This document shows, piece after piece, positions 5,146 through 62,014 of a DNA stretch of 64,000 nt (the stretch's first letter is position 1; each line of letters starts with the position of its first letter). Both the position numbers and the translations under genes were made by a program. Source of the DNA: Macrostomum lignano. Its lineage: Eukaryota. The notes under the pieces are model-generated. The model was given only the letters and a program-made list of their open reading frames with translations, did no database searches and had not been told where the DNA came from. The DNA is taken from positions 62,001-126,000 of the forward strand of contig NIVC01002751.1 in assembly GCA_002269645.1 (NCBI GenBank). The letters run 5' to 3'.

Positions 5146-5296
5146 GTAAGGACACACAAAGCAGTGGTAAGAGAGCTTCCCTGAAGAAGATTTCAGCAAT
5201 GATGACGGGATGCCGCATGAGTTGCATTGGATCATAGACTGCTTGAAAATATTTTAATCCAGGAGCGTGATGTTTGCTTCCAATTGTGCTAGAAAA

Positions 5297-5750
5297 TCAC
5301 GGATGTTGCATGAAGAATATTTTTTAAACCCGTTAGTGGTACTGGAAGATCATGGATGTTGCATGAAGATTTATTTAAATCCGTTAATGTTACTGGAAGA
5401 TCATGGATGTTGCATGAAGATTTATTTAAATCCGTTAGTGGTACTGGAAGATCACGGATGTTGCATGAAGATTTATTTGAATCCGTTAGTGGTACTGGAA
5501 GATCATGGATGTTGCATGAAGAATATTATTTGAGCCCGTTAGTGGTACTGGAAGATCACGGATGTTGCATGAAGAATATTATTTGAGCCCGTTAGTGGTA
5601 CTGGAAGATCAAGGATGTTGCATGAAGAATATTATTTGAGTCCGTTAGTGGTACTGGAAGATCATGGATGTTTCATGAAAAATATTATTTGAGTCCGTTA
5701 GTGGTACTGGAAGATCATGGATGTTGCATGAAGAATATTATTTGAATTCA
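5297..5750. repeat. 51-53-bp intronic tandem repeat, ~9 copies
   Basis: Unit CATGGATGTTGCATGAAGATTTATTTAAATCCGTTAGTGGTACTGGAAGAT. Confidence 0.95.
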
Positions 5751-6139: not shown

Positions 6140-6470
6140 GTCTGTCTCCGTCTATTTATCTGTCTCCGTCTATTTGTCTCTGCATGTTTGTCTGCTTGTC
6201 TGTTTGTCTCAGTCTGTCTGTCTCTCTCAGTCTGTTTGCCTCAGTCTGTTTGCCTCCATTTGTTTGTCTCCGTCTGTTTGTCTGCTTGTTTATTTGTCTC
6301 AGTCTGTTTGTTTGCTTGTCTCTGTCTGTCTCAGTCTGTTTGCCTCAGTCTGTCTGACTCCGTCTATTTGTCTCAAGTCTGTTTGTCTCAGTCTGTTTGT
6401 CTCAGTCTGTTTGCTCAGTCTGTTTGTATGCCTGTATCAGTCCGTCTACATCTGTTTGCCTGTGTCAGTC
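6140..6470. repeat. Degenerate TGTC/TGTT low-complexity tract
   Basis: Tetranucleotide-like periodicity; ORFs 6110-6650 are artefacts. Confidence 0.85.
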
Positions 6471-7326
6471 CGTTCTTCTCTCAGCCGCTGCAGGCTCTCA
6501 TCTCGGCCTTTTCCTAACCAAAGCAAGCAACCAAAGTCGAACCTCTCACCACCCAAGCCCAGACCAAGAAGCACATTGGCACTGTCGAAGTACTTTAGTT
6601 ATGCTGGCGTGTACATCCATAACGTATTGGCGTTCTGGTATTGTGTATAGAATTTATCCTTTTCTGCGTAAGATGCCTCAGTGTCATTATAAAATTGCAC
6701 CGAAATACTGTTATATATATTTTTTATATTTATTAAAAGCTACTAACGACCGATTTTTCAATTAACAGTGACACTAGTGTGCTCCGGGGGATATAAATAC
6801 GTGGGAAAACAATAGCTGATCATCCCTAACGTGAATTAGATCAACCAACTGGGCCTTCTTTCCCCAGCCAGAGCCTGACGGCACTGAAGTACAGAGAGAA
6901 ATTCCGTTAATGTACATTTACAACTGGCTACTATGATACATATATGCTGGGACTGGTGAATCTTAATCTGATTACAATGACAATATATAAAATACAGATT
7001 TGTTTAAACAAAATTGTTAAAAACAGTTTTATTAGATTTGTGTTCATAAAAGATTCAACGCGACTGCGTAAGGATATGTTGGTTACTTAAGCCGTGTTTT
7101 TTTACAATTCTTTCGTTCGCAGTTCAAGTCGGGTGATTGCTCGGGTGCCAAGGCTGCATGGGAATAGAGCAGATACCACTGTAGTTCATTCAAGGACCAC
7201 CAATAGTTACCGGTGAATCAGGACGTGGCACTTGTCCAAATTTAGTGGTAACTTTGCTTTAAAATGCATTGGCGAGATAATAAATCTAAATTTTTTAAGC
7301 ACTTAATGAGCTATAGTTTATCTTCT

Positions 7327-7632
7327 GGGGCTGCAGCCTAGTGGTTAAAGCGTTGGACTGAAAGGTCGGAGGTTCGATTCCCGACCTACTCGGAACAATT
7401 TGTGTCCTTGAGCAAGACACTTAACTCTGCATTGGTTCAGTTCACTCAGCTGTAAAATGGGTGCCAGCATTAGCTGGGGTAATTTTGGTGTGTGGCGACC
7501 CCCCAGTCCTTGGACTGAACAGCCGTACGCAGCCTTCAGATGCGCCGCGCAATAGCTGCGGCTGAGCTGTCGGTTGCACATCTGTCGATTGGGGCAAGTG
7601 CAATCAATTAGCACTATTATTATTATTATTAT
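7327..7632 (+). mobile_element. tRNA-derived SINE with CORE (MIR-like) domain, family A
   Basis: A-box TAGTGGTTAAAGCG, B-box GGTTCGATTCC, central GTGTCCTTGAGCAAGACACTTAAC...CAGCTGTAAAATGGG similar to the MIR CORE, (ATT)n tail. Confidence 0.8.
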
Positions 7633-7639
7633 TGTCATG

Positions 7640-8480
7640 ATGAATCGAGCAAGGCATTTTGACCCCGACACCGATCGTGAGTTTGAAGAAGAAGACGACA
7701 GTGTTTTCACTGATGATGAAGACGAAACAGATCAAGGCAAACAAGATATTGCCGCTGACGATGGTGCATTCAACGTTTGCATTGGTCTAAAATGGAGTTC
7801 TATGCTACACCATTCTTCCAGCTGCGAGCCTGTCTGCAAAGAGACAGGTGTCAGCAGATCAGCAGTCTATTACGCTTCTACGACTGCACCAACTTTGGCA
7901 CCGCTGATCCTCTAGCTAAGGGCAGGCCCTTCATCAACTGCGTGCCGCAGATCTGCCGGAATATGCCATAGAAGAAGCTAAGCGTAGAAGAAGAACTGGT
8001 GCTGTTCAGAGGAAGAGTGCTGTTCCGCCAATTACACTCCAGCAAAAAAGCGCGGTAGGGCATTAAGATTTATTGCTTTTGTGAGGCAAAAACAGGTTAT
8101 GTTAGGTTTAGATAACTTTGAGTATATTACGAGTACAGCAGCAAATTGAGCCGCAGACCACAGATTTGAGACTAATGAGAACAGGTCATCCGCAGTCTTG
8201 GAGCTTTAAGCAAGTTCTAGTGGTCCTTCATAGGGTTAGTCATAGGTGTTGCTCAGACGCCAATTGGCTCAACGGAAATTGTTCACATTCCAAAGGTTCA
8301 TATGAAATTTCTTAGCAGATCAGATGCCATAGGCTCGTGGAGAATCGTTTTTGTACATTCTGACTGTGCTTGAGACTTGGGCTGTGTGGGCTGGGATACA
8401 GATGATGTCATGGTGAAAGCCTAACAGACAGCAGGTCCCGTCTATTGGATAGGGTCCATCTTATATTAAGCAAACTTAGG
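7640..8480 (+). pseudogene. piggyBac (PGBD-type) transposase relic
   Basis: Acidic N-terminus, then LRFYD...DPLAKGRPF...KLSVEEELVLFRGRVLFRQLHSSKKAR*GIKIYCFCEAKTGYV, matching piggyBac LSVDES..FKGR..FKQYIPSK..RYGIK; stops and deletions. Confidence 0.8.
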
Positions 8481-9724: not shown

Positions 9725-10030
9725 AGCTACGAGTACGTAACCAGCTTTGCTCACAAGATACTGAATCGGTTAGCCAAGCTACTCAAGCGGTTTTGCTAAC
9801 AAGATACTGAACCGGTTAGCCAAGCTACTCAAGCGGTTTTGCTAACAAGATACTGAACCGGTTAGCCAAGTTACTCAAGCGGTTTTGCTCACAAGATACT
9901 GAACCGGTTAGCCAAGTTACTCAAGTGGTTTTGCTCACAAGATACTGAATCGGTTAGCCAAGCTACTCAAGCGGTTTTGCTAACAAGATACTGAACCGGT
10001 TAGCCAAGCTACTCAAGCGGTTTTGCTAAC
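9725..10030. repeat. 46-bp intronic tandem repeat, ~7 copies
   Basis: Unit GCTACTCAAGCGGTTTTGCTAACAAGATACTGAACCGGTTAGCCAA fills most of TMEM151 intron 2. Confidence 0.95.
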
Positions 10031-10053
10031 AGAACATTCAAACAGTTGCGTAC

Positions 10054-14996: not shown

Positions 14997-17900
14997 TATA
15001 CAGTGCGACGTCTAGTGTTTTGAATCCAAATGTCTATGATAATATTCCAAAAAGTGGAATAATGATAGATTGCGTAGTAGGTCACGGAGGTGAAAAATCA
15101 CCGAAAGATGAGTGTGCGTAGCAATGGCAAAATCGTTTCTAATATGAGGCAGTGTGTAAGTATGTATAATGACTAAACAACAATTTCTTTCAATTATTCA
15201 AGGCCCATGTAAAAACTACAATGAATATAAAACAAAAGAATATGAAATATTCATTTTAAATGGTTATAGATTATCTTGTAATTCTTGACAGGCCACGATT
15301 TTCTTCCTCATCCATATTCGATAAGTTTTGGCAGCAAGCGCGACGACAAAGGTCAATACAAAGTCTATGCATTTTAAAGTAACGATTTGCTTCTAAATGC
15401 TATTGGCAAGTATAGTTCTAATCGAAAGCAACTAAAAAATTAAAAAATACTGATATTTTTCTTCTGCTAAAATTAAGGCTAGAAATAATGGTGTTTTAGT
15501 GATTGCTTAACAATGTCTCTCTCTTTGGCGCAAATATGAATTGGCATCTTGGCATCGCATGACGGAAAATGAATGATGACGAAGAATGATGAATGGTAGC
15601 AGCACTCTCGTTGAAATGTAATATATTCAGAATTCAGATAAGTAATTGCAGTAATATCATTATTGTTCTCAGAATCTCAGTAGGTGAGTTACTTGAGCTG
15701 GGTTCTGCTGCCATAGGCCTAGGCGGCTAGGCCTATAGCCATAGGGCGACTGCAATGTCGGCCTGGCCGCTGCCCGCAGCCCGCGCACCAGCGCCTGGGG
15801 ACGGGTTCCAGGACATTTCGTCAAAAATATTTTCGTGAAAAGCCTTTTCGTCAAACATTCTTAAGTCATTTCGCCTGGCATCCTGGATATGGACCTGGCC
15901 ACCTGGGCAAATTAAAAAACCATTGGCATTGGCCATTGGGAAGTTGGGAACAACTCACCAGTTTTTCTTAGACCTGTTTAAGTCCAAAAAAATAAAGTAC
16001 TAGCTTGAACTATTGTTCTGATAATTTCTATTAATAATAGTGCATATATTACAGATAGGGTTAAAGTTGGTATAAATTTAAAAGGTCTAGTTAGTTAAGT
16101 TGGCTTGGGCTAGGCAGGGCAATGTTGGGTAGGTAGCAGGCCCATAAGCCTACCCTAAAAATTGACTTAAAAATACAAAAGTAATTTTTATATGTGTTCT
16201 ACTATTTAAATTAATTAAAATGGCCATATAGGCCTATAATATAATAAATAATATAGACATTAAAATGCCTGTTTACAACAATTAGACTCTTCTAATAGGG
16301 CCTATTGAATATGATATAAGAATATGACTTAGGCCCCTCTTTACATAAAAAATTAAGCATTCATGGTTAGTGCTTATCTTATTATGCCTATAGACAATAT
16401 AAAGACATATTTTCATTTGGCCCATTTATTATATTAGGCCCTCCTAGGCTAGCCTATTTAAAATAGAATATTCAAGGCATATACTAAATGTTTATTATTT
16501 AAGTCTTAATATGGTATGCCAAATTGCACATACAACATAAACCAATTTTGCCTTTTTCAATTATTATTAGTTCTTAATGTTTAATGGAATTATAATACAA
16601 TAGCCATAGGCCTACCCCTAGGCTAGGTCTACTATATAAATGGCTTGATATATTTATTTCTATTTTGTTTTTTTATTAAGTCCCAAAAACTTTAAAACTT
16701 TTTTCCTTTTATACAAAATGTTCCATTACAGCATTCACCATTATGTTTTCTTTTTGTTATATATTAAATAAAAAGATTTTAAAAAATGTGTTTAAAGCCA
16801 TAGTCCCAATTTATAAATAATTATTTATCTATACTTAAATAGTAGGTCTATGCCAAAATGGCTTGATTATCAATTGTTACATTCATACATGCCTACCTAA
16901 CACCCATCCAACAATATTATACAAGGTAAGTTGCAAAATAAAAAATTCAAGAAATGAAATATTGGGGAAAGAAAGAAAGGAGAAAAAGAGAAAAAGAAAA
17001 GAAAAGACAGATAAATGAAAAAAGGGAAAAAGAGAAAAGAAAAAAGCAAGAAAAGTCATACAAAGTGAAAATTAAGTCACAATCAGGGGAACTAAGTGGC
17101 TATTAGAAGAAACAGTTGCAATTGGGAGAAACTAAGTTGCAAATTTAGACAAAACTAAGTTGCACCAGATGGGTGAAATTTTAAGGTTGGGCATATATGG
17201 TTATTTAAAAAATTTCTAGTATAGGCCTACTAATAGCTTTGCTAAGTGTGGGTTTAAAGCCAATAATTGTATCAAATGATATATTTTAACCAAAAATAGA
17301 AACAAGGCAATAGATAAAATGATTTTAGCTTGTCTTGTCAATGTATATGTATAATATATTAAAAAAGGAAAATATATTAATATTCATTCATTTTAAATGA
17401 TTACCTATAGGCCTAATACAACAATCAATTTAGAAATAATATTAATTCTTAAACATGGAAATTTTAAATAACAAAGCCTAACAATTTCTTTAAAGAACTC
17501 TTTAGTATAGTTTATAGATCATATAGGTAGACCAAGTAAATGCAATATTAATAGCAAATATGGTAATTAATGAATGTTTTTTTACTTTTTAAAAGTATAT
17601 ATTGTCTAATATCATAGTTAATTTTATAAAATTTCAATAAAAAGCAATTAATCAATCATTAGTTTTTTTATTGCATGTGTTATAACATATAAATCTTAAT
17701 TTTGGCATCCTTAATTTGGATCCCCAAACAATAAGTTGGCACCCTTTGTAGAAGGTCCATTTTTTATATTTTTTGGAACATCAATAAATTTATGTTTATT
17801 TTGATTTTCTGGAATTTCAAAAGTAATTTTAAGTTTAAAAATTGAATATAGAATTTTGCAATTCCTATGGATCAGAAATGCTTAGCAATGTAAGGGTAGA

Positions 17901-18083
17901 AAAATATATTGGTATTTTATTTGATTTTGAGCTTTCTGACTGATGCCAAATGGCACTGCAATTCTAAGACAAAAAAACATGTTTTTCTTTATTGTCCAAC
18001 CACAGAAGTTGTGTATGCAAATGTGTTTGTTATTATATTTATAAATAATGAGTGCAAGTTTATGTGTGAAAACAAGCCCTGCT

Positions 18084-18398
18084 CATACATGCGCAACAGT
18101 CGGCCGAGTCGGCCGATCCGGCCGAGTCGGCCGATCCGGCCGACCAATTTGGCGGCCAACCAAGGAGGTCGCAAAAATGCCCACCCAAAAAAAGAACTAA
18201 GTAGTAGTACTAAGTAGCTGACGAGGCATTTTGGCTTAATAATACAGTCATAGTTACTCCTGCCGTTTACCCAAAGTTGCGTTAATTTTGCTTTCGGGTT
18301 ATTTTCATGTAAGTCGCATTTTTGGCCAAAAACTACGTCACATTTTTGTTAAAACTAAGTCGCATGGCCGACCGAATTTCGGAGGTTGCGCATGTATG
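18084..18398. mobile_element. MITE, hAT-like (14-bp TIR, 8-bp TSD)
   Basis: TIR CATACATGCGCAAC / GTTGCGCATGTATG; TSD GCCCTGCT at 18076-18083 and 18399-18406; internal 18-bp repeats GTCGGCCGATCCGGCCGA. Confidence 0.85.
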
Positions 18399-18593
18399 GC
18401 CCTGCTGCTTTTGTGTCTAATTTGAGCTTTGATTCCAATAGGGTTGTTCAAAAGGAAAAGTATGAGAAGAGTAATATTTGTGCCTGATTTCTATTTGAGG
18501 TAATACCCCCCCCCCCTATGTATATTTAGTAATTTACTATCCAAGCTAAGTAATGATTTAAATATATGCTTTTTAATAATCAGACTTTGAATA

Positions 18594-21572
18594 ATGCATG
18601 AAAGGCCTGTCAATCTGACTGGCAGTGACGGCCTACCAATGGCGCACAGTGCAGCCGCAAGCGGCTCTAAAGATCGCGAATTCGCTACTGCTGACAGCAG
18701 CTCAGTCAGCAATGAGATGACCGCCAAATTGAATGCCAGCTTGTACAGCTGGTCGCAAGCGGAGCTAGCCGTTGTTGCTGACGTCCTTGACACTTGGCAT
18801 CTGGCCAGCGCTCGGGCAATTTGGCTTCGCCTGCTCCGCCGAGTACCCGGCACAGACAAGAAGCCGCGCGATGTTGAAACTCTTCTAGAACGCATTGCCA
18901 GGTATTCCAATCTGACCCAGTCTGCCGATACTTCTTGTGCCGGAAGTGCCACCGACGACAATCCGACATCTATGGACGCATTCCTGTGCATGCTAGACGA
19001 TCTTGTACCCGGCGGCCTGGACTTCTCAACTGAGCTGGCCGACGTGCTGATTGAATCAGCTAGCACGGCCTCCGGGCAGCTTGCCGAGGCCTATTTATTT
19101 TTAGCTAGCCTGCTGGACGGCCGGCCAGCCACTGGGTTGGACAGTGTGTCCCCGGCAGTCTGCAAGCGTCTGCTCGGCATGCTGACCGACCTTCTACCGT
19201 TAGCTAAGTCGGCCACCGAGCAGCGCGACTGTCTGTACCGCCTGCTTGGCTTGGCGCACACCTCTGCCAGCTTGCCTCGGGCTACGGTGTTTCGCGATCG
19301 TCTTCAATCGCTACTGCGAATGCCGCTCAGCTCGAAAGCGTCCACCGCTGCTAGGAGCGATGATGTTGCTGACGAAGATGCAGTCGATGACAGCTGGCTT
19401 CGAAGCCGGTGCGCTTTGCTGGCTGACTACGCGGAGTATAGCGTGAATCCATTGAATCTGTCCGACCAGCTATTGGCCTCGTTCCCTAGCAACGATGCCG
19501 AACCAAAAGAATTCAATATCGATGCTGAAGACGCGCCTACTACTAGCAGTAGTAGCTTTATGAAGCGCTATATGACTAGCCGGGCCGACTTAACCAAAGA
19601 GCTGCTGCTGCGCGGCCTGTGCGATTCCGAGTCTGATGAAGAGCAGCCCTTTAGGCGTGTCGCCTACGCCGCCGTGGCTTCGGCGCGGCCCGATGGCGCC
19701 AGGCCTCGGAAGATTCAAAGCGACGTCCCGGCTGCTGCCGTTGCTGCAAAGAAATCGACGCAAAAGCGGAAGACTGTTAAAAAGCGTGCTGGTCGGCCAT
19801 CAAAGAAGGCTCAGTCGATGAAGGAATCAAGGAGTCCTAGTCCTACAAAGAAGCAAACAGGTAGAAAAAGACTGAGATTGGCTACAACTAAGTCTGTTGC
19901 AACAGCAGCCAGCAGTAGAGGTAATAAGAGACGCAAAACTTTGTTGTCTGAGACATCCCAGTCTGCTTCATCGACTAATGACAGCTCTATTGAGGAATTG
20001 TTGGCAGCTGGCCAACAGGACGATGATGCGGCCGTTGAACAAGCGTACTCTAATGAAGAAGAGCCAGGTGTGCAACCTTCCATTGACGCTAAGCAGGCAC
20101 GCGCTCCTGGGGGTGAGCTACAGGCTGATTCTTCTAAGCGGCCCTCTCAAACACCTAAGTCTGTTGCAACAGCGGGCAGCAGTAGAAGTAATAAAAGGCG
20201 CAGAACTTTGCCATCGGAGACATCCCAGTCTGGTTCATCGATTGATGCCAGCTCGATTGAGGAATTGTTGGTAGCTGGCCAGCCAGACGATGATGCAGCA
20301 GTTGAACAAGCGGCTAATGAAGAAAAGTCAGGTGCACAGCCTTCCACTAAGGCTAAGCAGGTATGCGCTATTAAAGAAGGTAGGCTACAGGCTGATTCTT
20401 TTAAGCGGCCGTCTCAGACACCCAAGTCTGTTGCAACATCGGGCAGTATTAGAAGTAATAAAAGGCGCAGAACATTGCTAGCCGGGAATAAGTCCCAGTC
20501 TGTTTCATCGATTGCGACTGTGAACTCGTTGGCAGCTGTCCAACCAGACGATGGTGCAGCCGTTGAACAAGCGGCTAATGAAGAAGAGCCGGGTGTACAA
20601 CCTCCCATCAAGGCTAAGAAGGCGTGCGCTCCTGGAGAAGGTGAGCTGCAGGCTGATCTCACTAACCAGCCGTCTCAAACTCTGCCGCCAAACGAGCCAT
20701 CCAGCGTTGAAATATCAGCCGAAGAGCAGCAGTCAACTAAGCCTACAGTAGAGCGGGTAGTTGTCGAGATTGTCGGAGTAGTAGAGCCGCCATTAGATCA
20801 GTTTGTTATATTGGAGAATTCTCCCAATAAGTCGGCTAATCCAGTTGATGCAGCTACTTCATCGACTGATCAGCCATCGCATTTGTTGAGTAGCAGTGCT
20901 CAAACTCAGCAGGTAATTAGTGCTGAGTCGGTAGCGCAGACTCCGCCTGCATCAAAATCTATAAGCAAAACTAAACCAACTCACGGCAAAGAGAACAGCG
21001 TCAGCGGCGGCTCGGGTGCATTGCGCACCGAAACAGTCATGGTCGATCCGTTCAAGGTTAATTTGAACAAGTTCATACCCCATCGGGTTGCGAGGCCGCC
21101 AGTTTTCGAGCGGCCGAAAGCGAATATTTCTTTACCGAATCTGCCTCCGCCACCGTCGCAGCAGTCAGCTAGCGTTAGTTCTCAACCAGCTGTAGAGACT
21201 TCTACTGCGACTAGCGTAGTCTATCTTGGTCAGAAGCAGCTAACAAAAGTGCCGCTAGCGCGCCGAGGTCGGGCCAGAACCTACCGCAATAGTAGCTCAG
21301 TACCTGAGCCTGAACTCACGTCTGCGCGAGATTTAGTGCAAGCCGGTTATGCTAAGCGGGTTGGGCCTAAGCTATCGGTGCCAATTTCATCGTATGTGAA
21401 GTCTGTGGTAACCACAGATTCGACAAGGACAGCTGCTAATGCGGCGCCAGGAACAGCTGCCGCAGCGCCAGGGACAGCTATTCCGGGGCCAAGGACAGCT
21501 ACCGCAGCGCCAATGACACCTACCGCAGCGTCAGGGACAGCTACCGCGGCACCGGGCGCCAGAAGCGGTTAG
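18594..21572 (+). CDS. Intronless 992-aa protein: helical SNAPC2-like N-terminal region, K/R-rich NLS-like segments, three 89-aa repeats, disordered tail
   Basis: 2979-nt uninterrupted non-periodic ORF with coding-like composition; motifs WSQAE..., PTSMDAF..., LAEAYLFLASLLDG recall SNAPC2 (from memory, unverified). Confidence 0.8.
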   Translation: MHERPVNLTGSDGLPMAHSAAASGSKDREFATADSSSVSNEMTAKLNASLYSWSQAELAVVADVLDTWHLASARAIWLRLLRRVPGTDKKPRDVETLLERIARYSNLTQSADTSCAGSATDDNPTSMDAFLCMLDDLVPGGLDFSTELADVLIESASTASGQLAEAYLFLASLLDGRPATGLDSVSPAVCKRLLGMLTDLLPLAKSATEQRDCLYRLLGLAHTSASLPRATVFRDRLQSLLRMPLSSKASTAARSDDVADEDAVDDSWLRSRCALLADYAEYSVNPLNLSDQLLASFPSNDAEPKEFNIDAEDAPTTSSSSFMKRYMTSRADLTKELLLRGLCDSESDEEQPFRRVAYAAVASARPDGARPRKIQSDVPAAAVAAKKSTQKRKTVKKRAGRPSKKAQSMKESRSPSPTKKQTGRKRLRLATTKSVATAASSRGNKRRKTLLSETSQSASSTNDSSIEELLAAGQQDDDAAVEQAYSNEEEPGVQPSIDAKQARAPGGELQADSSKRPSQTPKSVATAGSSRSNKRRRTLPSETSQSGSSIDASSIEELLVAGQPDDDAAVEQAANEEKSGAQPSTKAKQVCAIKEGRLQADSFKRPSQTPKSVATSGSIRSNKRRRTLLAGNKSQSVSSIATVNSLAAVQPDDGAAVEQAANEEEPGVQPPIKAKKACAPGEGELQADLTNQPSQTLPPNEPSSVEISAEEQQSTKPTVERVVVEIVGVVEPPLDQFVILENSPNKSANPVDAATSSTDQPSHLLSSSAQTQQVISAESVAQTPPASKSISKTKPTHGKENSVSGGSGALRTETVMVDPFKVNLNKFIPHRVARPPVFERPKANISLPNLPPPPSQQSASVSSQPAVETSTATSVVYLGQKQLTKVPLARRGRARTYRNSSSVPEPELTSARDLVQAGYAKRVGPKLSVPISSYVKSVVTTDSTRTAANAAPGTAAAAPGTAIPGPRTATAAPMTPTAASGTATAAPGARSG

Positions 21573-22664
21573 TACCGACAAAGAAATGTTAATTTAAAGC
21601 GTAGAGTTTTTTTCAAGCTTACTTTTAAGTATACGATATGGTCTTTTTAATTGCTCAAAGCAAATATCTACTAGTAAAATTTCATATGTAATAACAAAAT
21701 TTCACTATAATCAGTCTATATAGCCTTAATTTAACATGTACTGTAAGAAATACTGGAACATTTTATGTTACATTAAAACTGCGTGCCATGCCAATTGCAT
21801 TTTGACTCGTATATTCAGCGAAGTAAATACTAAGTCCTTTGTTTGTTACTTAAGCACTTCCTAGTTGATTCTGGATGATTGCATACAATCTGCCTATTTG
21901 AATTTCGCTGCGTTGCTTTACAATAAGCTGCTGTATTGACTAAACTATAAGTTCAGTACTATTTAACGAGAGATGAAAAAATCTCATTTGTTCCGTTTGA
22001 TTATTTGACATTTGTTGAAACTGCTTTATCCAAGCTTATTTTGCTTTTAAATAAAATTTAGTTATCTTCCTATGCCACAATCAAGAGACCAATAGGCATC
22101 AAGATACTAAGTCAGAGGTTGACAAACTTTTTTGCCTCAAAGGTCAGGTGAAGAACCTAGCTAATGACTGCAGGCCAGATGAGAGAGAAGAGGGAATAGA
22201 GGAGACAAACGAGTTGAGGGATGAGAGAGGAGAAAAGAGAAGAGAATGGAGGTAATAGAGTTACGAAGAGACCTTGAGCTATTGTGAAGTTTCAAAGGAC
22301 CGGGGCCGTGAACAGATAGATAGGTTCCCGGGCCGCATGTGTTGCCGACTCTTGTGCTAAGTGAAATACAGCTGCAGTTGCTAGGGGGCAGCCGCAGATC
22401 AAGGCGACAGTCAAACTGCAGCCAGCGACCCCTGAGCATCATCCTCATCATCTGATATATCATCCTCAGGCAGCCAGTGGATAGGGTCTTTTATATAGGC
22501 GCAAATTGGAAGACAGGTTTTTATAGACAATTTCCGTACACTAAAACATACTTTACCAACCCAACCGATAGGAAAAATCTAATTGAACAGCTGCTACTGC
22601 CTACTAGTGTAAGTAGTGTAAACGGAATGTAAATAAAAGAATTTTCAACTCCGCAGCCCGCCGC

Positions 22665-23627
22665 ATGATAGCCGCCGTGCAGTCGCTGCTGTCCGATTGG
22701 CAGCCGCATGAGCTGCAGTTGGCCGTCCGGCTGGTCAAATCCAATCCGGCCATCGAGCCGGCCAGCCTTGCCGAGGCTCTACAAGTCGAGCTGGGCTCGG
22801 ACAAATCCGCCGAGGACGTACGCGGCCTGTTCAATCAGCTGCTGGCTCACGCCGACGCTGTCAGCCGATCTGCTGAAGCTATTCAACGGCCCAGACGGCG
22901 GCCGCCGCTTCCCATTGTTGAAATCAGTGTCGGCAAGCCGCCTTCGATGCCGCAATTGAAACGCCCGGCAGCCGAGTCGCAGTCGCAGAACTCTGCGTCA
23001 GTGCCGTCAAAACGCGACCGGCCAGGCCTGCCTAAAATATCGCCATTGAAGCCCCTGACTGCTCTCACCCAATCTCAGCAGAGCCCGGCCATATCGCTAA
23101 CCCATATTAGTCCTAGCCAAGCCAATCAGACCCAAGCTCACGCTGCCCAGACTCCTACTCAGCCGGCTACTGAGACTGCGTCGTCTTCAACTGTGAAAAT
23201 TATTCGAATTGGCGAGGCCTCATCGACAACAACAACTGTTGTTAGGAAGCCGGCGCCGACTCCGCAGCGGCCGGTAGCGCCGCAGGTGCACACTCAGTAT
23301 AGGACTGAGCGAGTCCAGCTAGACGATGCCGGATTTGTGAAGATCACCCTGCGACCGTTACGGCAGCAGTCTGCCACTGGGCCGGGCACTCGGCCTGTCA
23401 GCTCGGCTGACTTGCCAGAGTCCGCGGTGTCGGCTCAGTCATTGACGCTTCTGCCAGCCTCCCTGCCCGTTAGTAAAGGAACTGGCGGCATCAACTTTGG
23501 CAGCCTCACTAATTCCACGTCTACTAGCGGCGGCCGGGAATTGGGCTTTTTAGAACAGCCATCCGGCCTGCAGTTGCCGCTGCTAGTTGAGCCCAACGAT
23601 GCCGACCATCCGATTCTGATTGATTGA
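22665..23627 (+). CDS. Intronless 320-aa protein with SANT/SNAPC2-like N-terminal helical domain and S/T/P-rich tail
   Basis: 963-nt ORF preceded by a 3' splice-like site (ttttcaactccgcag); N-terminal WQPHELQLAVRLV...KSAEDVRGLFNQL. Confidence 0.75.
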   Translation: MIAAVQSLLSDWQPHELQLAVRLVKSNPAIEPASLAEALQVELGSDKSAEDVRGLFNQLLAHADAVSRSAEAIQRPRRRPPLPIVEISVGKPPSMPQLKRPAAESQSQNSASVPSKRDRPGLPKISPLKPLTALTQSQQSPAISLTHISPSQANQTQAHAAQTPTQPATETASSSTVKIIRIGEASSTTTTVVRKPAPTPQRPVAPQVHTQYRTERVQLDDAGFVKITLRPLRQQSATGPGTRPVSSADLPESAVSAQSLTLLPASLPVSKGTGGINFGSLTNSTSTSGGRELGFLEQPSGLQLPLLVEPNDADHPILID

Positions 23628-23948
23628 CTCATGCATTGACTTCTGTACTTATTGTATTTAACTGTAACGGGTAGTGTTGAAGGGGACTATAAGGTGTTTT
23701 TTGAGTACGAGTTGTGTCTGCTGCTAGATTCAAGCAATTTATCTAACAGGCGCTTCTCTTAGCTCTTTAAAACTGTTTTGTATGTGTTAATTTAATAAGA
23801 ACTGGTGCTTAACTTATTTGACCCATAGAGTTGCAAAGTACTCGTAGGTTGTGCATGAATCAGGGACTACTCAATAACTAGGGACGGGGAACTACGAAAT
23901 TTGGAGGCCCGATCTATTAATAACTTAGTCCTCGTAAAGCATTACCTG

Positions 23949-24069
23949 CATGCATGCGCAACCTTGGGATTCACCCGGCCGTTTCTATTGACAACACACA
24001 CACACACACACATGTAAGTCGCTATTGGCTGAGAGCAGTCACATGACTAGTATTCTGTCCAATAGCGAC

Positions 24070-24123
<54 letters not shown>

Positions 24124-24168
24124 CCAATAGAAACGGCAGGGTGAATCCCTAGGTTGCGCCCAAGCATG
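23949..24168. mobile_element. Foldback / MITE-like inverted repeat with (CA)n/(TG)n in the arms
   Basis: Arms GCGCAACCTTGGGATTCACCC...(CA)n...ATGTAAGTCGCTATTGG and their reverse complement, ~90 bp each. Confidence 0.8.
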
Positions 24169-25059
24169 ATTATGGATAGGTTCTTACGGGAGCACGAGAA
24201 TTTCCCACAGGAAGAAAAACCCTACGGGAAAACCTCGCCGGGAAAAATTCTCACGGGAAATTCTCATAGACCCGTTCTTAACTACAGCCACAAACTTACA
24301 TGCTACATTCGCGTGTAGCCTTATCTTCAGTTAGGCTTGGCCATAGGACAGTGCTTTTAAACGAGTCACATACTTTTTTTACAATGAGTAAGTGATTAAG
24401 TTGTCCTTGAAGTATTTGTTCTTTGTATGGTTAAAATTCACTGAAAAAAAGTTCTTTAACGTGTCAGCCTGATTATTGAGCGTTTGTTTTAAACAAACAA
24501 CTTGTTCTCTGCAAACACTGTGCATTAATAATCTGTAGGCAAAAGTATCAATTTATATTTGGAAACGCCGTCGTAGTAGATAATCTATAATTTAGATAAT
24601 CCTTTGGTTCTGTCTGCTACTTAAAGCGTGGCTTGATTAACATTCAATTTGGCAACGGCTAGCAATCACAATTTTAGTTTCTAAAATGTTTTATCAACTT
24701 GCACTCGTTTAAAGGTTACAATTGACCGTGTAAATTCATCGCCATTGCTAGCAGATTTTTTAATTTACATGTATTTTTATTAGGTACCACGTTCTTCTTT
24801 CCCGCTCTGGTTTTGCTATGCATTTTATTCACTTTTAAATAATTACTATGCCTAATGCTGTTATCTCTGATATGTCTCGGAAATAGTTTGTTGCAATCGT
24901 TGTAATATTCATTTGTACTGCGATCTCATTTCATTGAGTATATTATCATCTGTGTGTATTATCTGCATCGTTTCTCCGTGTATTTAACATGAATGCTGGG
25001 TAATTTAAATTTTCAATTTCGTAATAATGTCCAAAGTATTAAGGTAGTTAAGGGACTGA

Positions 25060-25420
25060 GGGACCAGTGTTGAGCAAGCGGTAGAAGCCACACTGAGAGA
25101 CCCCGTGGTGTTGAGTAAGCGGTAGAAGCCACACTGAGAGACCCCGTGGTGTTGAGTAAGCGGTAGAAGCCACACTGGGGGACCCGTGATATTGAGTAAG
25201 CGGTAGAAGCCACACTGGGGGACCCGTGATATTGAGTAAGCGGTAGAAGCCACACTGGGGGACCCGTGATATTGAGTAAGCGGTAGAAGCCACACTGGGG
25301 GACCCGTGATATTGAGTAAGCGGTAGAAGCCACACTGGGGGACCCGTGATATTGAGTAAGCGGTAGAAGCCACACTGGGGGACCCGTGATATTGAGTAAG
25401 CGGTAGAAGCCACACTGAAG
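25060..25420. repeat. 40-bp tandem repeat, ~9 copies, just upstream of SMARCD
   Basis: Unit ATTGAGTAAGCGGTAGAAGCCACACTGGGGGACCCGTGAT. Confidence 0.95.
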
Positions 25421-25510
25421 TGACTGGTCTACGCCATTTCTCTAATTGAAATTTTTATTTCCTAAAAAGTAGCAAGTTCTCTGCTCTCCTAATCGATAAA
25501 TGTGTTTCCA

Positions 25511-26077
25511 ATGCGTGACATGGTACCAACCCATTGCAGCCAGCAGTTTAACAATTCAAACAATATGCAGCCTCGTCCGGCATTCCCGTGCGGCCCGCCA
25601 GGCGCCAGCAGTCCCGGCCCTGCCGCAGCCGGCGGAAGCGGCGCACCCCCTGGAGGCTATCCGCCTATGCCGCCAGGCGGGCCGCCTGCCCAATATCGCC
25701 CAGGACCGCCGCCGCCACCGCCCGCTCAAGTCGGTCCGGCTCCGCCGCCGCAGCCGCCTCCGCCGACTTCAGCATCCTCGACTTCTTCGTCGTCGTCTTC
25801 TCGACGCGGCGGCGGAGGCGGAGGCGGCGTCTCGTCCCAGCAGCGTCAGTCGTCGGGCTACATGCAGCCGGGAGGAGGCGGCAGTGGTCCCTATCCGCCA
25901 CCCCGGCCGCCGCCACAGCAGCAGCAGCAGCAGCAGCAACAGTCTGGTATGCCGATGCTATCAGCTAAACGAAAGCGCCGTCACGCTGACCGGCTGCTGT
26001 CTGAGCGAATCCAACAGCTGGTGCCGGAATCTTCCAGCTATATGGAGCTGCTTAAACTGGAAAAGAAGCTGGACCAG
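25511..26077 (+). CDS. SMARCD: SWI/SNF subunit BAF60 (SMARCD), exon 1
   Basis: First ATG at 25511; P/Q/G-rich N-terminus, then KRKRRHADRLLSERIQQLVPESSSYMELLKLEKKLDQ; donor cag|gtacat. Confidence 0.9.
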
Positions 26078-26168
26078 GTACATTTTTACGTATTGATAAG
26101 AGTTGTGGTCCGTCTGGCTTTGGACTGCTGGTCGATTTCGCAAGCTCGGAATTTCACCTTGTCGTAGA

Positions 26169-26285
26169 TTCGAGCTTGGGGAGTTTCGAGCTTGGGGAGT
26201 TTCGAGCTTGTGAAGTTTTGAGCTTGGGAGTTTCAGGCTTGGGGAGTTTCGAGCTTGGGGAGTTTCGAGCTTGGGGAGTTTCGAG
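26169..26285. repeat. 16-bp tandem repeat in SMARCD intron 1
   Basis: Unit CGAGCTTGGGGAGTTT, ~7 copies. Confidence 0.9.
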
Positions 26286-26390
26286 TAAGTCTAACTCTGG
26301 TAATTAAGATTCAAAAAGTAACTCTACCAAGATAAAATACTTACCTGACTGTTATTATTTGATTGTTGAAATATTGATAAAAATGAAATG

Positions 26391-26496
26391 GAATAGACAC
26401 AACAGAGACAAGGGATTAAGACACAACTAAGTCAGGGGATATAGGCACCACTGAGATAGGAAATAAAGACACATCTGAGAGACGGGTAAAGACACG
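26391..26496 (-). repeat. Degenerate inverted copies (~4.5) of the 24-bp intron-2 minisatellite
   Basis: Units such as ATTAAGACACAACTAAGTCAGGGG resemble AACTGAGACAGGGGATAAAGACAC, the reverse complement of the intron-2 unit. Confidence 0.75.
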
Positions 26497-26638
26497 AGCT
26501 AGGCTATTAAGAGTGGCTTCTTCCTTTTTAAGAGGTACGGTGTTGGCAACTTAATATCTGGAGCTAGCAAAGAGCCCAACAGTTCTACTAATGTACTGAA
26601 GGCTGTAGCAACTCCCCCCCCCCCTCATATTAAACCAG

Positions 26639-26974
26639 GTGATTTTGCGCAAGAAACTGGCCATCCAAGAGGCCCAGAAGAAGCCGCAAAAGCTGCGCCG
26701 CAAGCTGCGCATTCTGATTAGCAACCAGTTCAATCCGGGCACGGATCCAAGCGCCGAGCCTGGCGGTCCCGAGCCAGTTGTCCCCAACTGGGAAGTTCGA
26801 GTCGAAGGCCGCTTAGTAGAAGATGGGGCCGGGGACTCGGCTAAAGCTAAGCGCAAATTCTCCAGCTACTTCAAGAGTCTGGTCATCGAGCTGGACAAAA
26901 CTCTGTACGGCCCGGATAATCACCTGGTTGAGTGGCACCGGTCACCTAATACACAGGAGACCGATGGCTTTCAG
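26639..26974 (+). CDS. SMARCD: SMARCD exon 2
   Basis: [12 protein letters not shown]...[12 protein letters not shown]...WEVRVEGRL...[28 protein letters not shown]...ETDGFQ; 336 nt, phase 0-0. Confidence 0.95.
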
Positions 26975-29015
26975 GTGTGTCTTTATCCCCTGTCTCGGTT
27001 GTGTCTTTATCCCCTGTCTCAGCTGTGTTTTTATCCCCTGTCTTAGTTGTGTCTTCATCTCCTGTCTCAGTTGTGTCTTTATCCCCTGTCTCAGTTGTGT
27101 CTTTATTCCCTGTCTCAGTTGTGTTTTTATCCCCTGTCTTAGTTGTGTCTTCATCTCCTGTCTCAGTTGTGTCTTTATCCCCTGTCTCAGTTGTGTCTTT
27201 ATCCCCTGTCTCAGTTGTGTCTTTATCCCCTGTCTCAGTTGTGTCTTTATCCCCTGTCTCAGCTGTGTTTTTATCCCCTGTCTTAGTTGTGTCTTCATCT
27301 CCTGTCTCAGTTGTGTCTTTATCCCCTGTCTCAGTTGTGTCTTTATCCCCTGTCTCAGTTGTGTCTTTATCCCCTGTCTCAGTTGTGTCTTTATTCCCTG
27401 TCTTAGTTGTGTCTTCATCTCCTGTCTCAGTTGTGTCTTTATCCCCTGTCTCAGTTGTGTCTTTATTCCCTGTCTCAGTTGTGTTTTTATCCCCTGTCTT
27501 AGTTGTGTCTTCATCTCCTGTCTCAGTTGTGTCTTTATCCCCTGTCTCAGTTGTGTCTTTATCCCCTGTCTCAGTTGTGTCTTTATCCCCTGTCTCAGTT
27601 GTGTCTTTATCCCCTGTCTCAGCTGTGTTTTTATCCCCTGTCTTAGTTGTGTCTTCATCTCCTGTCTCAGTTGTGTCTTTATCCCCTGTCTCAGTTGTGT
27701 CTTTATTCCCTGTCTTAGTTGTGTCTTCATCTCCTGTCTCAGTTGTGTCTTTATCCCCTGTCTCAGTTGTGTCTTTATTCCCTGTCTCAGTTGTGTTTTT
27801 ATCCCCTGTCTTAGTTGTGTCTTCATCTCCTGTCTCAGTTGTGTCTTTATCCCCTGTCTCAGTTGTGTCTTTATCCCCTGTCTCAGTTGTGTCTTTATCC
27901 CCTGTCTCAGTTGTGTCTTTATCCCCTGTCTCAGCTGTGTTTTTATCCCCTGTCTTAGTTGTGTCTTCATCTCCTGTCTCAGTTGTGTCTTTATCCCCTG
28001 TCTCAGTTGTGTCTTTATCCCCTGTCTCAGTTGTGTCTTTATCCCCTGTCTCAGTTGTGTCTTTATTCCCTGTCTCAGTTGTGTTTTTATCCCCTGTCTT
28101 AGTTGTGTCTTCATCTCCTGTCTCAGTTGTGTCTTTATCCCCTGTCTCAGTTGTGTCTTTATCCCCTGTCTCAGTTGTGTCTTTATCCCCTGTCTCAGTT
28201 GTGTCTTTATCCCCTGTCTCAGCTGTGTTTTTATCCCCTGTCTTAGTTGTGTCTTCATCTCCTGTCTCAGTTGTGTCTTTATCCCCTGTCTCAGTTGTGT
28301 CTTTATCCCCTGTCTCAGTTGTGTCTTTATCCCCTGTCTCAGTTGTGTCTTTATCCCCTGTCTCAGTTGTGTCTTTATTCCCTGTCTCAGTTGTGTCTTT
28401 ATCCCCTGTCTCAGTTGTGTCTTTATCCCCTGTCTCAGTTGTGTCTTTATCCCCTGTCTCAGTTGTGTCTTTATTCCCTGTCTCAGTTGTGTCTTTATCC
28501 CCTGTCTCAGTTGTGTCTTTATCCCCTGTCTCAGTTGTGTCTTTATCCCCTGTCTCAGTTGTGTCTTTATTCCCTGTCTCAGTTGTGTTTTTATCCCCTG
28601 TCTTAGTTGTGTCTTCATCTCCTGTCTCAGTTGTGTCTTTATCCCCTGTCTCAGTTGTGTCTTTATCCCCTGTCTCAGTTGTGTCTTTATCCCCTGTCTC
28701 AGTTGTGTCTTTATCCCCTGTTTCTGTTGTGTTTTTATCCCTTGTCTCAGTTGTGTCTTTATCCCCTGTTTCTGTTGTGTTTTTATCCCTTGTCTCAGTT
28801 GTGTCTTTATCCCCTGTTTCTGTTGTGTTTTTATCCCTTGTCTCAGTTGTGTCTTTATCCCCTGTCTCAGTTGTGTCTTTATTCCCTGTCTCAGTTGTGT
28901 TTTTATCCCCTTTCTTAGTTGTGTCTTTATCCCCTGTCTCAGTTGTGTTTTTATCCCCTTTCTTAGTTGTGTCTTTATCCCCTGTTTCTGTTGTGTTTTT
29001 ATCCCTTGTCTCAGT
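26975..29015. repeat. 24-bp minisatellite (~85 copies) filling SMARCD intron 2
   Basis: Unit GTGTCTTTATCCCCTGTCTCAGTT with recurring variant units; source of the spurious 866/558-aa ORFs and the N-terminal part of the 948-aa ORF. Confidence 0.97.
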
Positions 29016-29094
29016 CGTGACTCTCGCTATCCATATCTCAGACTTGAGCTCATTGCCATCAACACCGAATCCCGCACGCGAATCCCCGTGTCAG

Positions 29095-29793
29095 GTGAAG
29101 CGCCCAGGCGACAAGCCGGTGAAGTGCACGGTGCTGCTGATGCTGGACCAGCAGCCGCCGCAGTTCCGCCTGCAGCCGCAGCTGTCCCGCCTGCTCGGCA
29201 TCCAGTCGGGCACGAAGGCCCAGATTCTGCTAGCATTCTGGCACTACGTGAAGACCAAACGGCTGCAGGATCCTCAGGAGCGCAGCTATATTGTCTGCGA
29301 TACCGGCATGGCCGAAGCCTTCCGGCTCGATCCGCAGCAGCAGCCGCCGCCGCGGCTTCGCTTTGCCGACGTGCCTCAGCGCCTGCACCAGCTGCTGCTG
29401 CCGCCAGATCCCATTGTGATTAATCACCTGATCTCCAACGAGCCCGGCGCTAAGAAGACCGCTTGCTACGAGATCGAAGTTGAAGTTGACGATCCCTACA
29501 AGCAGATGGCGCACAGTTTCTTAGTTAACACGTCCAGCGCCCAGGAGCTGGCCATCATCGATGCAAAACTGTTCGACACCATTGAGCAGATCAACCAGAT
29601 GGCCCAGCACCGCGACTTCTTCAACCAGTTCACCGAGGATCCGCGCCAGTTCATCACCAGCTGGCTAGTGTCGCAGAAGCAGGACTTGAAGACTATGACG
29701 GATCTGGTTGGCAACCCCGAGGAGGAGAGGCGGGCCGAGTTCTATCAGGACAGCTGGCTGCACGAGGCCGCCACTCGGTACTTCTCTAGCAAG
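29095..29793 (+). CDS. SMARCD: SMARCD exon 3 (SWIB/MDM2 domain)
   Basis: VKRPGDKPVKCTVLLML...QILLAFWHYVKTKRLQDPQER...LLPPDPIVINH...ACYEIEVEVDD...NPEEERRAEFY; donor aag|gtgaga. Confidence 0.96.
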
Positions 29794-29883
29794 GTGAGAG
29801 ACTCTCGGAATTGTGCATTCTAGTGCAGTTTTGAATCAGCTTGAAGTCTCCAGTTTCTCTGCATTTTAACTTTACACTTTCAG

Positions 29884-29931
29884 GTAACTCAGCGTCGCCA
29901 GGAACTTGAGCACGCTCTCGGAATTCACTAA
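29884..29931 (+). CDS. SMARCD: SMARCD last exon
   Basis: tttcag|VTQRRQELEHALGIH*, matching VQQRRQELEQALGI; AATAAA near 29980. Confidence 0.9.
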   Translation, partial: VTQRRQELEHALGIH

Positions 29932-34890: not shown

Positions 34891-36094
34891 ATTTGCAGTC
34901 ATACTCTGCAGGAGGAATTAGTAGTAGGGCCAGGTGCACCATCAGCTGTGGAAAGAAATGGTTGGCAGTCGATCAGTACAGGAAGCCAAGCTGCTTGGTT
35001 GATGTGCGTAACGCAATAAGTAGGGCTTCGTAATTCGAACTCCCACGAAGCTGGAACGAGCCCATTCGTGTTGTTGAGTCTGCCGACCGACTAATAAAGA
35101 GAAAGAACTGGAGAGTTTTCGGTGTTCGAAACGGCTGGACAAAATGACTGACGTCTCCCTGTGTGTGTCTGCCTTTGTGTGCGTGTGTGTCTGATTCCGG
35201 TGCTGCGTCCCGTGTTGCCAGGGCGGCTCTGAGTCTTCCCTTCTCTCTGTGTGAGCCGGAGGGCCCCCGCCCGCGCGCTAGACCTCCCCGTCCGTCCGTC
35301 CACCCGCCCATTACTTTAGTCCGCTTCTAAAGCCTCTGCTCTTAGTTGCCTAGACCGAGTGAGAGCGTTAGAGTGGCCCCGCGAGGGTGGTCCCCATTTG
35401 CGATACTGCTCCACTGGGCTTGGGGCTTCTCTTCTTTCCTCTCCTGCCTCTCCAACCCCCCTACTGCACCCCCCCCCCGGCCATGCGACCGGCTCCGCTC
35501 AGTCTCTCAGTGACTCACGCGGTACACGGTGGGAGCGGAGCTCCGGCCTGCAAGCTAGAAACGAGAGAAGAGAGAAAGAACGGAAAAAATTCTCTCCGAG
35601 TCGCTAGGAAAGGGGAAGAGGGAGGAAAGGGGGAGCTTTGAAGGCCTTGGTTTACGAAGAGAAGAGAAAACCCCGTGGAGGTTGCCACGCTCCCGGCCCG
35701 TGTGTAGCTCAGGGGGTTGGGTTGGGTAGACTCTACCTCCTCCCCTCTGCTGTCTGCCTGCTCCGGCCTCCGGCTGCTGCTGCCGCTGTTTCCCGCTGAG
35801 TCCCGAGTCCTATCCTCGACCCTTTCCTACTCTCTCTCCTACTTTGCAACCTAACTCTCCTTGCCACGTTCCCGCCTTTTTACATTTCCTTTGCAACCGT
35901 CTGTGTCTTCTTGCTTCTCAACTGTACCTCTTCTGATCTGGGATATAATTCTGAGTTCTGACTCAACTTCATCTAGGCGGGTGGGTTTCTAGCGTTACTA
36001 TTTCTAATGTTGTAACACTTCTAATAGATCATTTTGAACCGGGATTTCGGGATTCGGAATTGGCGGAGTGGCTGAAGGATTCGAATTAGATTAG

Positions 36095-36870
36095 TGATCA
36101 GGATCTTTAAAATTAGGGATCGGATTTCTAGACCAGTGATCGGGATTGGAGGCTTAGAGATCGGGATTCTAGAATGAGTGATCGGGATTCTAGAATTAGT
36201 GATCGGGGTTCTAGAATTAGTGATCGGGGTTCTAGAATTAGTGATCGGGATTCTAGGATTAGTGATCGGGATTCTAGAATTAGTGATCGGGATTCTAGGA
36301 TTAGTAATCGGGGTTCTAGAATTAGTGATCGGGGTTCTAGAATTAGTGATCGGGGTTCTAGAATTAGTGATCGGGATTCTAGAATTAGTGATCGGGATTC
36401 TAGAATTAGTGATCGGGGTTTTAGAATTAGTGATCGGGATTCTAGAATTAGTGATCGGGATTCTAGGATTAGTGATCGGGATTCTAGGATTAGTGATCGG
36501 GAATCTAGGATATTAGTGATCGGGGTTCTAGAATTAGTGATCGGGATTCTAGAATTAGTGATCGGGGTTCTAGAATTAGTGATCGGGATTCTAGAATTAG
36601 TGATCGGGATTCTAGGATTAGTGATCGGGATTCTAGGATTAGTGATCGGGATTCTAGGATTAGTGATCGGGATTCTAGAATTAGTGATCGGGATTCTAGG
36701 ATTAGTGATCGGGATTCTAGGATTAGTGATCGGGATTCTAGGATTAGTGATCGGGATTCTAGAATTAGTGATCGGGATTCTAGGATTAGTGATCGGGATT
36801 CTAGAATTAGTGATCGGGATTCTAGGATTAGTGATCGGGATTCTAGAATTAGTGATCGGGATTCTAGGAT
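36095..36870. repeat. 21-bp intronic minisatellite
   Basis: Unit ATTAGTGATCGGGATTCTAGA, ~35 copies. Confidence 0.95.
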
Positions 36871-39036: not shown

Positions 39037-39440
39037 GATGCAGCACCAGCAGCAGTTGGAGTCGCTCTACGTCCAGTTCTACGCCAGCTTCGTTAACTGG
39101 GCCGGGCATCGGTTAGCTCTTGATCCTCTGGCCGGAGCCGCTCTGGCTGGTGTCGCCTCCGCTGCCGGCGTTGACCCGGCCTGCTGCCTCGGCTCGGCCC
39201 TGTCCGATTATGTCCGCAGGCATCAGCTGGCCGGCCGGCCAACTTGGCTGCACGCCAGCCTGCTGTTGCGGTGCTTGGACAGGTCGGACCTGGGCTTGAC
39301 GCCCGTTGTTAGGCAGATTCTGCACTCACTGGGCCGTTCGGTGTCGCGGCATCTCAACGCTAATCGAATGCTTAAACAGCTGCGCTCGTGTCTTCTTAGA
39401 CAGCTGTGGTGCGGCCAAACTGCATTGTGGATTATCAGCA
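39037..39440 (+). CDS. Orphan ORF nested in the RNF38 intron (helical, unknown)
   Basis: GC-rich, non-repetitive, coding-like stretch MQHQQQLESLYVQFYASFVNW...LRQLWCGQTALWII; TATATAAAAG ~115 bp upstream; reads on into the repeat array. Confidence 0.35.
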
Positions 39441-40000: not shown

Positions 40001-40266
40001 GGCACATTGTACGAGCTATGGTAAACTTATTCTTCCTAGAATCGACAATTCACTAAAAATAGTAGTAGATCTGTAAACAGGGGGTATGCAGGCTTCTGCG
40101 ACTCAGTTGTTTAGAAAGGGTCAGCAGTGCAGCTGGCTTCCTGGTTTTCAATTTACCAAATAGTAGTGCGTTTCTGGCGCTTAAAAAAGCCACTTATCCA
40201 GTATCTACAACTCCCTATAAGCAAGCTATACCATTACTAATAGTAGTGTTCTAACCCCCATTGCAG

Positions 40267-61930: not shown

Positions 61931-62014
61931 TCTCTGGCTCTCGTCCCCCCTCTCTCTATATCTCTTCCCCTGACTCTCGTCTCTCCGCTTCTTGCCAACC
62001 AATGATTCATTGGT

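Follow-up and report, generated by a model that had tools for sequence, protein, structure and literature searches.

Do two long open reading frames (ORFs) that follow one another on the same strand of the Macrostomum lignano genome represent two genes or one, and are their products related to SNAPC2, a component of the small nuclear RNA (snRNA) transcription machinery? The frames lie in a stretch of 64,000 nucleotides (positions 62,001 to 126,000 of contig NIVC01002751.1; hereafter the window), of which positions 17000-26000 are 100% identical to the deposited record (GCA_002269645.1), the record coordinate being the window position plus 62000. An initial annotation had described them as a tandem pair of intronless genes, restricted to this lineage, that share a SNAPC2- and SANT-like N-terminal module and lie upstream of SMARCD. 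Two long frames are indeed present where it had placed them, at 18594-21572 (ORF1, 992 aa) and 22665-23627 (ORF2, 320 aa) of the plus strand, and the next gene downstream is a SWIB-domain model whose first exon matches human SMARCD chains (E=7e-8). They are, however, probably not two intronless genes: a canonical GT-AG intron joins them in frame, and the spliced product is that of a deposited protein, PAA55454.1.

The intron occupies 21568-22656 (1089 nt, phase 1). Exon 1 ends at 21567, with AGAAGCG followed by GTTAGT, and exon 2 begins at 22657 with CC, directly after CTCCGCAG (in longer context TTTTCAACTCCGCAG) and 8 nt ahead of the ATG of ORF2 at 22665. The TAG stop codon of ORF1 (21570-21572) is located inside the 5' splice-site consensus GTTAGT. 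Splicing of 21567 to 22657 fuses ORF1 and ORF2 into an open frame of 1,314 codons, the last 1,310 residues of which are exactly PAA55454.1 (BOX15_Mlig011519g2, 1310 aa); this protein reads ...PGARS-ARR-MIAAVQ... where the product of ORF1 is joined to that of ORF2. The gene deposited at this locus spans window positions 18606-23627 and has this one product, its coding sequence (CDS) starting at 18606 and being marked 5'-partial. An exact-sequence look-up placed four deposited proteins in one cluster, comprising one ORF1-only model (996 aa), two ORF2-only models (317 and 316 aa) and the fused PAA55454.1. These models come from an annotation of RNA-seq-based transcriptional units that were cut into genes (.g1,.g2 and so on) wherever a trans-splice or poly(A) site had been mapped (PMC5730564). 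The partial CDSs among them start at odd places; we considered whether AG acceptors or an ATG at the end of the spliced leader (SL) could explain these 5' ends, and the positions do not fit. A search of the literature and its supplements for the gene ids returned no mention of them.

On balance, we favour the reading that ORF1 and ORF2 constitute one gene with two coding exons, BOX15_Mlig011519g2, which is possibly alternatively processed. Because the ORF1 stop codon falls within the 5' splice site, splicing would decide whether the product has 992 aa or 1,314 aa. According to this proposal, removal of the intron would join the two frames within a single transcription unit, while an RNA that retains the intron, or that is polyadenylated within it, would encode the ORF1-only protein, since the stop codon sits in the splice site itself. 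The ORF2-only protein would arise from an RNA with its own 5' end close to the acceptor. The sequences AATAAA or ATTAAA occur within the intron at 21772, 22050 and 22632. In terms of gene structure, what had been taken for two intronless genes would become a single annotated gene whose first exon has its stop codon within the 5' splice site.

The same arrangement is found at three homeologous loci (L001, L002, which is this window, and L003), with SMARCD downstream in each. Both ORFs are intact, and the donor and acceptor sequences identical, in 3/3 loci, and the copies share 99.3-99.9% identity, intron included. Codon differences between the homeologs, given as non-synonymous to synonymous, number 7:2 in ORF1 and 2:0 in ORF2; at such identity these counts carry no information on selection, and the ratio of the two substitution rates (dN/dS) is without power. 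A 7-aa repeat rich in A/P/G/T at the C-terminus of ORF1 has two extra units (14 aa) in both of the other homeologs. ORF1 is also 98% identical to GenBank PAA62961.1. Its candidate start codons are M1 at 18594, M16 at 18639 and M42 at 18717.

Outside these copies we found no relatives of either part of the protein. When each ORF was used in a word-indexed search of 5.8 billion proteins, only M. lignano's own copies were matched, and an exhaustive HMMER comparison of 1.84 billion representatives with ORF1 residues 1-345 returned only the query itself. No Pfam family was matched at E<=10 by the full ORFs or by five sub-regions, phmmer comparison of both N-termini with PDB sequences gave nothing relevant, and scans of metagenome contigs with both parts gave no match. 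In the databases searched the only relatives are near-identical M. lignano copies, which bears out the lineage restriction proposed earlier; judged by these searches, the gene product is taxonomically restricted. The spliced protein is composed of 13% Ser, 13% Ala, 8% Pro and 7% Thr. The product is mostly disordered, in keeping with this S/A/P/T-rich composition, and its three 89-aa tandem repeats are recent. Clusters of K/R residues at 391-398 and 424-426 resemble nuclear localisation signals. Helix-rich, hydrophobic stretches occur only at residues ~42-345, some 300 aa towards the N-terminus, and at ~995-1070. Because of this composition, the K/R clusters and the confinement of the helix-rich segments, we infer that the product is a nuclear, chromatin- or transcription-associated protein of scaffold type. 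M. lignano, a model organism for regeneration, would then have one more documented protein that is taxonomically restricted, disordered and probably nuclear. In having no homologue outside the species it resembles the taxonomically restricted genes already described in M. lignano (Wudarski 2017; Grudniewska 2018; PMC8629364), its three near-identical homeologous copies are as expected of the recently duplicated genome of this species, and, in common with other members of trans-spliced transcriptional units, it was deposited as a.gN gene cut from such a unit. The sole special point that sets it apart from other restricted genes is the exon-1 stop codon inside the 5' splice site.

The N-terminal region of ORF1 and that of ORF2 each contain a helical segment of ~70 aa, and in the spliced protein these weakly similar modules would fall at residues 42-113 and 995-1066. 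Both ORFs carry the W-x3-E-L motif on which their kinship had been proposed (W53-E57-L58 in ORF1, W12-E16-L17 in ORF2), but in the ORF1 protein it first appears at residue 53, away from the start, and the module aligns from Met42, whereas in ORF2 the alignment begins at Met1. A Smith-Waterman alignment of ORF1 40-120 with ORF2 1-85 extends over 72 columns with a score of 43, which was reached by 6 of 3000 shuffles (p about 0.002 for the restricted comparison and about p=0.1 when corrected to the full search space). BLASTP of the full-length proteins gave no N-terminal alignment, its best match (E=0.61) lying elsewhere in the proteins. AlphaFold2, run without an alignment, predicts helices at residues 3-10, 14-26, 32-43 and 49-74 of ORF2 (residues 1-100 modelled; predicted local distance difference test (pLDDT) 73, and about 80 for residues 11-70), and at residues 55-67, 71-82 and 91-105 of ORF1, the latter in a low-confidence model of residues 1-345 (pLDDT 41) that is unusable for fold comparison. 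At an offset of 41 residues the helix register of the two modules coincides, as far as the low-confidence ORF1 model can be relied upon. A shared module is therefore partly borne out, by the restricted alignment and the helix register, but it escapes BLASTP and depends in ORF1 on a poor model; we regard it as plausible but weak on this sequence comparison.

As to fold, the predicted ORF2 N-terminus is a small helical bundle that would be compatible with a SANT- or homeodomain-like fold. When the ORF2 module was compared with the PDB using Foldseek, homeodomain, Pax, HOT1, DMAP1-SANT and c-Myb repeats led the list, but none was significant (best E=0.8), and neither module matched a Pfam Myb/SANT family at E<=10. 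The SANT-like character originally proposed may still be compatible with these data. Like the SANT, Myb and homeodomain-type domains (DMAP1 SANT 3hm5, c-Myb R1/R2, the engrailed homeodomain), ORF2 14-74 is predicted to form a helix, a second helix and a long third helix, and has a Trp in the first helix with an acidic residue four positions on. Unlike them, it is without the second and third conserved aromatic residues, and its TM-scores (template-modelling scores, query-normalised) are 0.3-0.4.

Several observations weigh against a single gene of the kind that we favour. The transcript evidence is mixed, with a fused model at this locus and split models at the two others: although these are 99% identical to the window and were processed by the same pipeline, they received models in which ORF1 runs to its own stop and ORF2 stands alone, and separate mRNAs therefore probably also exist. 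The donor, GTTAG, differs from the commonest M. lignano donor, GT[G/A]AG (PMC8629364); an in-frame junction is expected by chance in 1 case in 3; the AATAAA at 22632, 25 nt before the acceptor, suits an operon-like arrangement; the homeologs are too alike to reveal purifying selection; and the nuclear or chromatin role of the product is put forward from its composition, its K/R motifs and a likeness in fold that falls short of significance. An appreciably less probable alternative, which we rank second, is that the locus contains two genes in an operon-like transcriptional unit, the ORF1 mRNA being polyadenylated just before 22657 and the ORF2 mRNA being SL trans-spliced at or near the acceptor. 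The fused deposited model would then be a minor cis-spliced by-product, and the genes would be old tandem paralogues, each starting with the module. Such an arrangement would account for the split models at 2/3 near-identical loci, for the.g1/.g2 ids issued by a pipeline that cuts units at trans-splice and poly(A) sites, for the placement of the AATAAA and for the alignment of both modules from a Met; moreover, trans-splicing affects 30% of M. lignano genes, and operons contain 15%. However, the models with ORF2 alone, which are marked as partial, begin 9-12 nt downstream of its ATG and do not lie behind an AG, and for these reasons look like truncated fragments and not like full mRNAs. With 1.09 kb between them, the ORFs are spaced at or beyond the 1-kb limit that was used to call operons and far over the typical distance of about 100 bp, the fused deposited model shows that the junction is used, and BLASTP detects no similarity between the two N-termini. 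One gene with two coding exons consequently stays first in our ranking.

Two further explanations question whether the frames are cellular genes at all. That one or both are non-coding chance frames in G+C-rich, stop-poor DNA is very improbable: ORF2 taken alone is only moderately unexpected from local base composition (probability of no stop 5e-5 per start), long antisense ORFs overlap ORF1, and the homeologs give no evidence of purifying selection, but the corresponding probability for ORF1 is 5e-19, all three loci have preserved both frames, the deposited models derive from transcripts, and the N-terminus of ORF2 is predicted with confidence to form a helical module. In addition, the boundary between exon and intron composition is sharp, G+C being 52-60% within the ORFs as against 38% in the 1.09 kb between them. 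Least probable of all is that the two frames were left behind by a transposable element (TE) or an integrated virus. The genome is repeat-rich and the uninterrupted frames are unusually long for M. lignano, but Pfam (E<=10) identified no transposase, reverse transcriptase, integrase or capsid domain, comparison of the ORF2 module with viral structures using Foldseek gave nothing significant, no further copy lies within the window, and the only copies are the three syntenic homeologous loci, with SMARCD following each. Of a TE- or virus-derived origin, which the initial annotation had named as a refuting outcome, these comparisons gave no sign in domains, viral folds or dispersed copies.

SNAPC2 (SNAP45) is an accessory subunit of SNAPc (snRNA-activating protein complex), and it was to this protein that both ORFs had been compared. 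The human SNAPC2 query used here shares 95% identity with primate entries. A search with it returned 325 SNAPC2 proteins; PF11035 is present in every one, and the 120 listed are mammalian. The profile was built from 25 diverse aligned sequences, mammals only. Pfam PF11035 was not matched at E<=10 by the full ORFs or by sub-regions. For ORF1, which had been thought to align with SNAPC2 both at its N-terminus and, in order, through its middle region, hhalign of the profile against residues 1-345 gave a probability of 1.2% over 15 columns and off-register (SNAPC2 225-239 on ORF1 53-67). With filters off, hmmsearch found nothing above shuffles in any part of ORF1, the Smith-Waterman score of the ORF1 module against the SNAPC2 N-terminal segment was reached by 734 of 3000 shuffles, and no ordered middle-region matches were recovered, block scores being within the shuffled range. 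ORF1 as a SNAPC2 relative, as originally proposed, is unsupported by these sequence comparisons.

For ORF2 the N-terminal resemblance is marginal. The profile aligned SNAPC2 22-80 with ORF2 10-75 over 56 columns at 36% identity, but with an hhalign probability of 0.6% (P=0.1); the segment of human SNAPC2 concerned has the landmarks W24, E28, R30, L32, L35-36, F65, L69 and K70. A filter-free hmmsearch of ORF2 1-100 gave 3.2 bits, reached by 21 of 2000 shuffles, and Smith-Waterman alignment with SNAPC2 15-90 gave a score of 45, reached by 17 of 3000. Gapped alignment of full-length ORF2 with human SNAPC2 gave z = 2.7-3.8 over global and z = 2.2-3.4 over block shuffles. Beyond the N-terminus, four SNAPC2 block hidden Markov models (HMMs) scored 1.3, -2.2, -2.2 and -4.2 bits in ORF2; the middle, C-terminal and tail blocks (APIEVW...KPT; DFEKIYKYL...ESAVVLDLL...LPC; CPLNPFLVPLELL) were negative in ORF1 and ORF2 alike, and the best collinear chain of blocks had a score reached by 103 of 1500 shuffles (p about 0.07). 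Motifs that appear collinear to the eye (PPLPIVEI with PPAPIEVW, GFVKI with DFEKI, ESAVSAQSLTLLP with ESAVVLDLLMSLP, and PLLVEP with PFLVPLE) were rejected when the chain test fell within shuffles. The p-values are optimistic, because the hypothesis arose from the same resemblance that was tested and the implicit search over many families is uncorrected. No SNAPC2 chain was found in the PDB.

It is unlikely, on this evidence, that exon 2 represents SNAPC2 in flatworms in a highly diverged form, with the ORF1 module as a paralogous copy, acting as an accessory SNAPc subunit at snRNA and SL-RNA promoters. Two methods, hhalign and hmmsearch, place ORF2 10-75 on SNAPC2 22-80, including W..E..RL, S.E.., F.QL and EAIQR. 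In shuffle tests the N-terminus gives p-values of about 0.006-0.01 and the gapped alignments of the full length 0.000-0.02; further on, PRRR and PP.PI(E/V) can be seen by eye to keep the same order. The proteins are also alike in length (320 aa for ORF2, 334 aa for human SNAPC2), in a helical segment of the form W-x3-E...RS/KS-x-E/D-I/V...F-x-Q-L and in a long disordered middle rich in P/S/T/A. They differ in that the blocks invariant in mammals (APIEVW, DFEKIYKYL...ESAVVLDLL and CPLNPFLVPLELL) do not rise above noise here, and in that the segment is apparently exon 2 of a 1,314-aa protein. The low hhalign probability, the absence of PF11035, the negative blocks and chain, the silence of ORF1, the uncorrected p-values and a test profile of mammals only all stand against relatedness, as does the description of the conserved SNAPc core in Drosophila and trypanosomes as SNAPC1, SNAPC3 and SNAPC4 only (PMC9758055). 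Of the N-terminal likeness first proposed, then, a marginal signal remains in ORF2, which is best treated as a long-odds lead from sequence; membership of the SNAPC2 family lacks statistical support. It is likewise unlikely that exon 2 is a true, extremely diverged SNAPC2 orthologue, fused or alternatively spliced to a large paralogous partner with a second SNAPC2-type module. To our knowledge, the factors that act at flatworm SL-RNA and snRNA promoters are poorly known. If the resemblance of exon 2 to SNAPC2 were real, and only then, the locus would matter more: the accessory subunit would extend beyond the organisms in which it is described, and the gene would offer a handle on snRNA and spliced-leader RNA transcription in a trans-splicing flatworm.

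The features of the favoured one-gene reading and of its surroundings are collected in Table 1.

Table 1. Positions in the window of the two coding exons and the intron of the proposed single gene, of protein segments and of neighbouring features
Feature	Position	Strand	Remarks
Coding exon 1 (ORF1 minus last codon and stop)	18594..21567	+	intact in all three homeologous loci
Intron, or alternatively ORF1 3' untranslated region/spacer	21568..22656	+	GC 0.38 vs 0.52-0.60 in ORFs; donor and acceptor identical in three loci
Coding exon 2 (ORF2 plus 8 nt ahead of ATG)	22657..23627	+	splice reproduces PAA55454.1
Helical module 1 (ORF1 residues 42-113), MTAKLNASLYSWSQAEL...DKKPRDVETLLERI	18717..18932	+	aligns to ORF2 1-72; pLDDT about 40; no Pfam match
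Helix-rich N-terminal ORF1 region (~residues 121-345)	18954..19628	+	helices predicted, pLDDT 41; matches no known family
Three tandem 267-bp (89-aa) repeats in ORF1	19884..20680	+	80% identical; NKRR(K/R)TL then acidic DDDAAVEQA..EE in each
21-bp (7-aa, A/P/G/T-rich) repeat, end of exon 1	21444..21547	+	repeat scan, homeolog comparison
Helical module 2 (ORF2 residues 1-75 = spliced 995-1069), ...SDWQPHELQLAVRLV...DKSAEDVRGLFNQLL...AEAIQR	22665..22889	+	AlphaFold2, Foldseek
SMARCD/BAF60 gene model, next gene downstream (context)	25541..29931	+	539 aa, SWIB domain
Minisatellite arrays	912-2228, 5292-5747, 9746-10031, 36090-36867, 39437-40003, 43273-44062		
Minisatellite arrays (further)	44529-45590, 47005-47505, 48254-49890, 60954-61935, 62521-63112		

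Several minor observations concern the DNA on either side of the gene. Upstream, G+C is only 27% in window positions 16001-18000, and L001 contains ~1.8 kb of extra DNA (6209-8026 of that locus) relative to window ~16610-16623, ~2 kb upstream of ORF1; this difference could be a TE insertion or a deletion. A 191-aa antisense ORF (18491-19066, minus strand) overlaps the start of ORF1 and is most likely a by-product of stop-poor composition. Downstream, the 1.9 kb from the ORF2 stop to the SMARCD start (23628-25500) contain no AATAAA or ATTAAA, as against three in the 1.09-kb intron or spacer, which may mean that the poly(A) signal is non-canonical or that the gene is co-transcribed with SMARCD. 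The same interval contains a (TG)23 run at 24075-24121 and a 40-bp tandem array at 25070-25417 (8.6 copies), ~120 bp upstream of the SMARCD CDS start. In L001 the same array extends over ~1.26 kb (16484-17740), so that its copy number varies in the putative SMARCD promoter region.

Scans of the whole window with Rfam, for tRNA and for a 35-nt spliced leader found none. Long minisatellite arrays, with units 14-73 bp long and as many as about 79 copies, are dense throughout and are responsible for several strong local GC/AT skews, for example a GC skew of -0.55 at 48254-49890. A 24/48-bp array of ~2 kb at 26971-29019, within the span of the SMARCD model and presumably intronic, gives rise to spurious ORFs of 866-948 aa on both strands.

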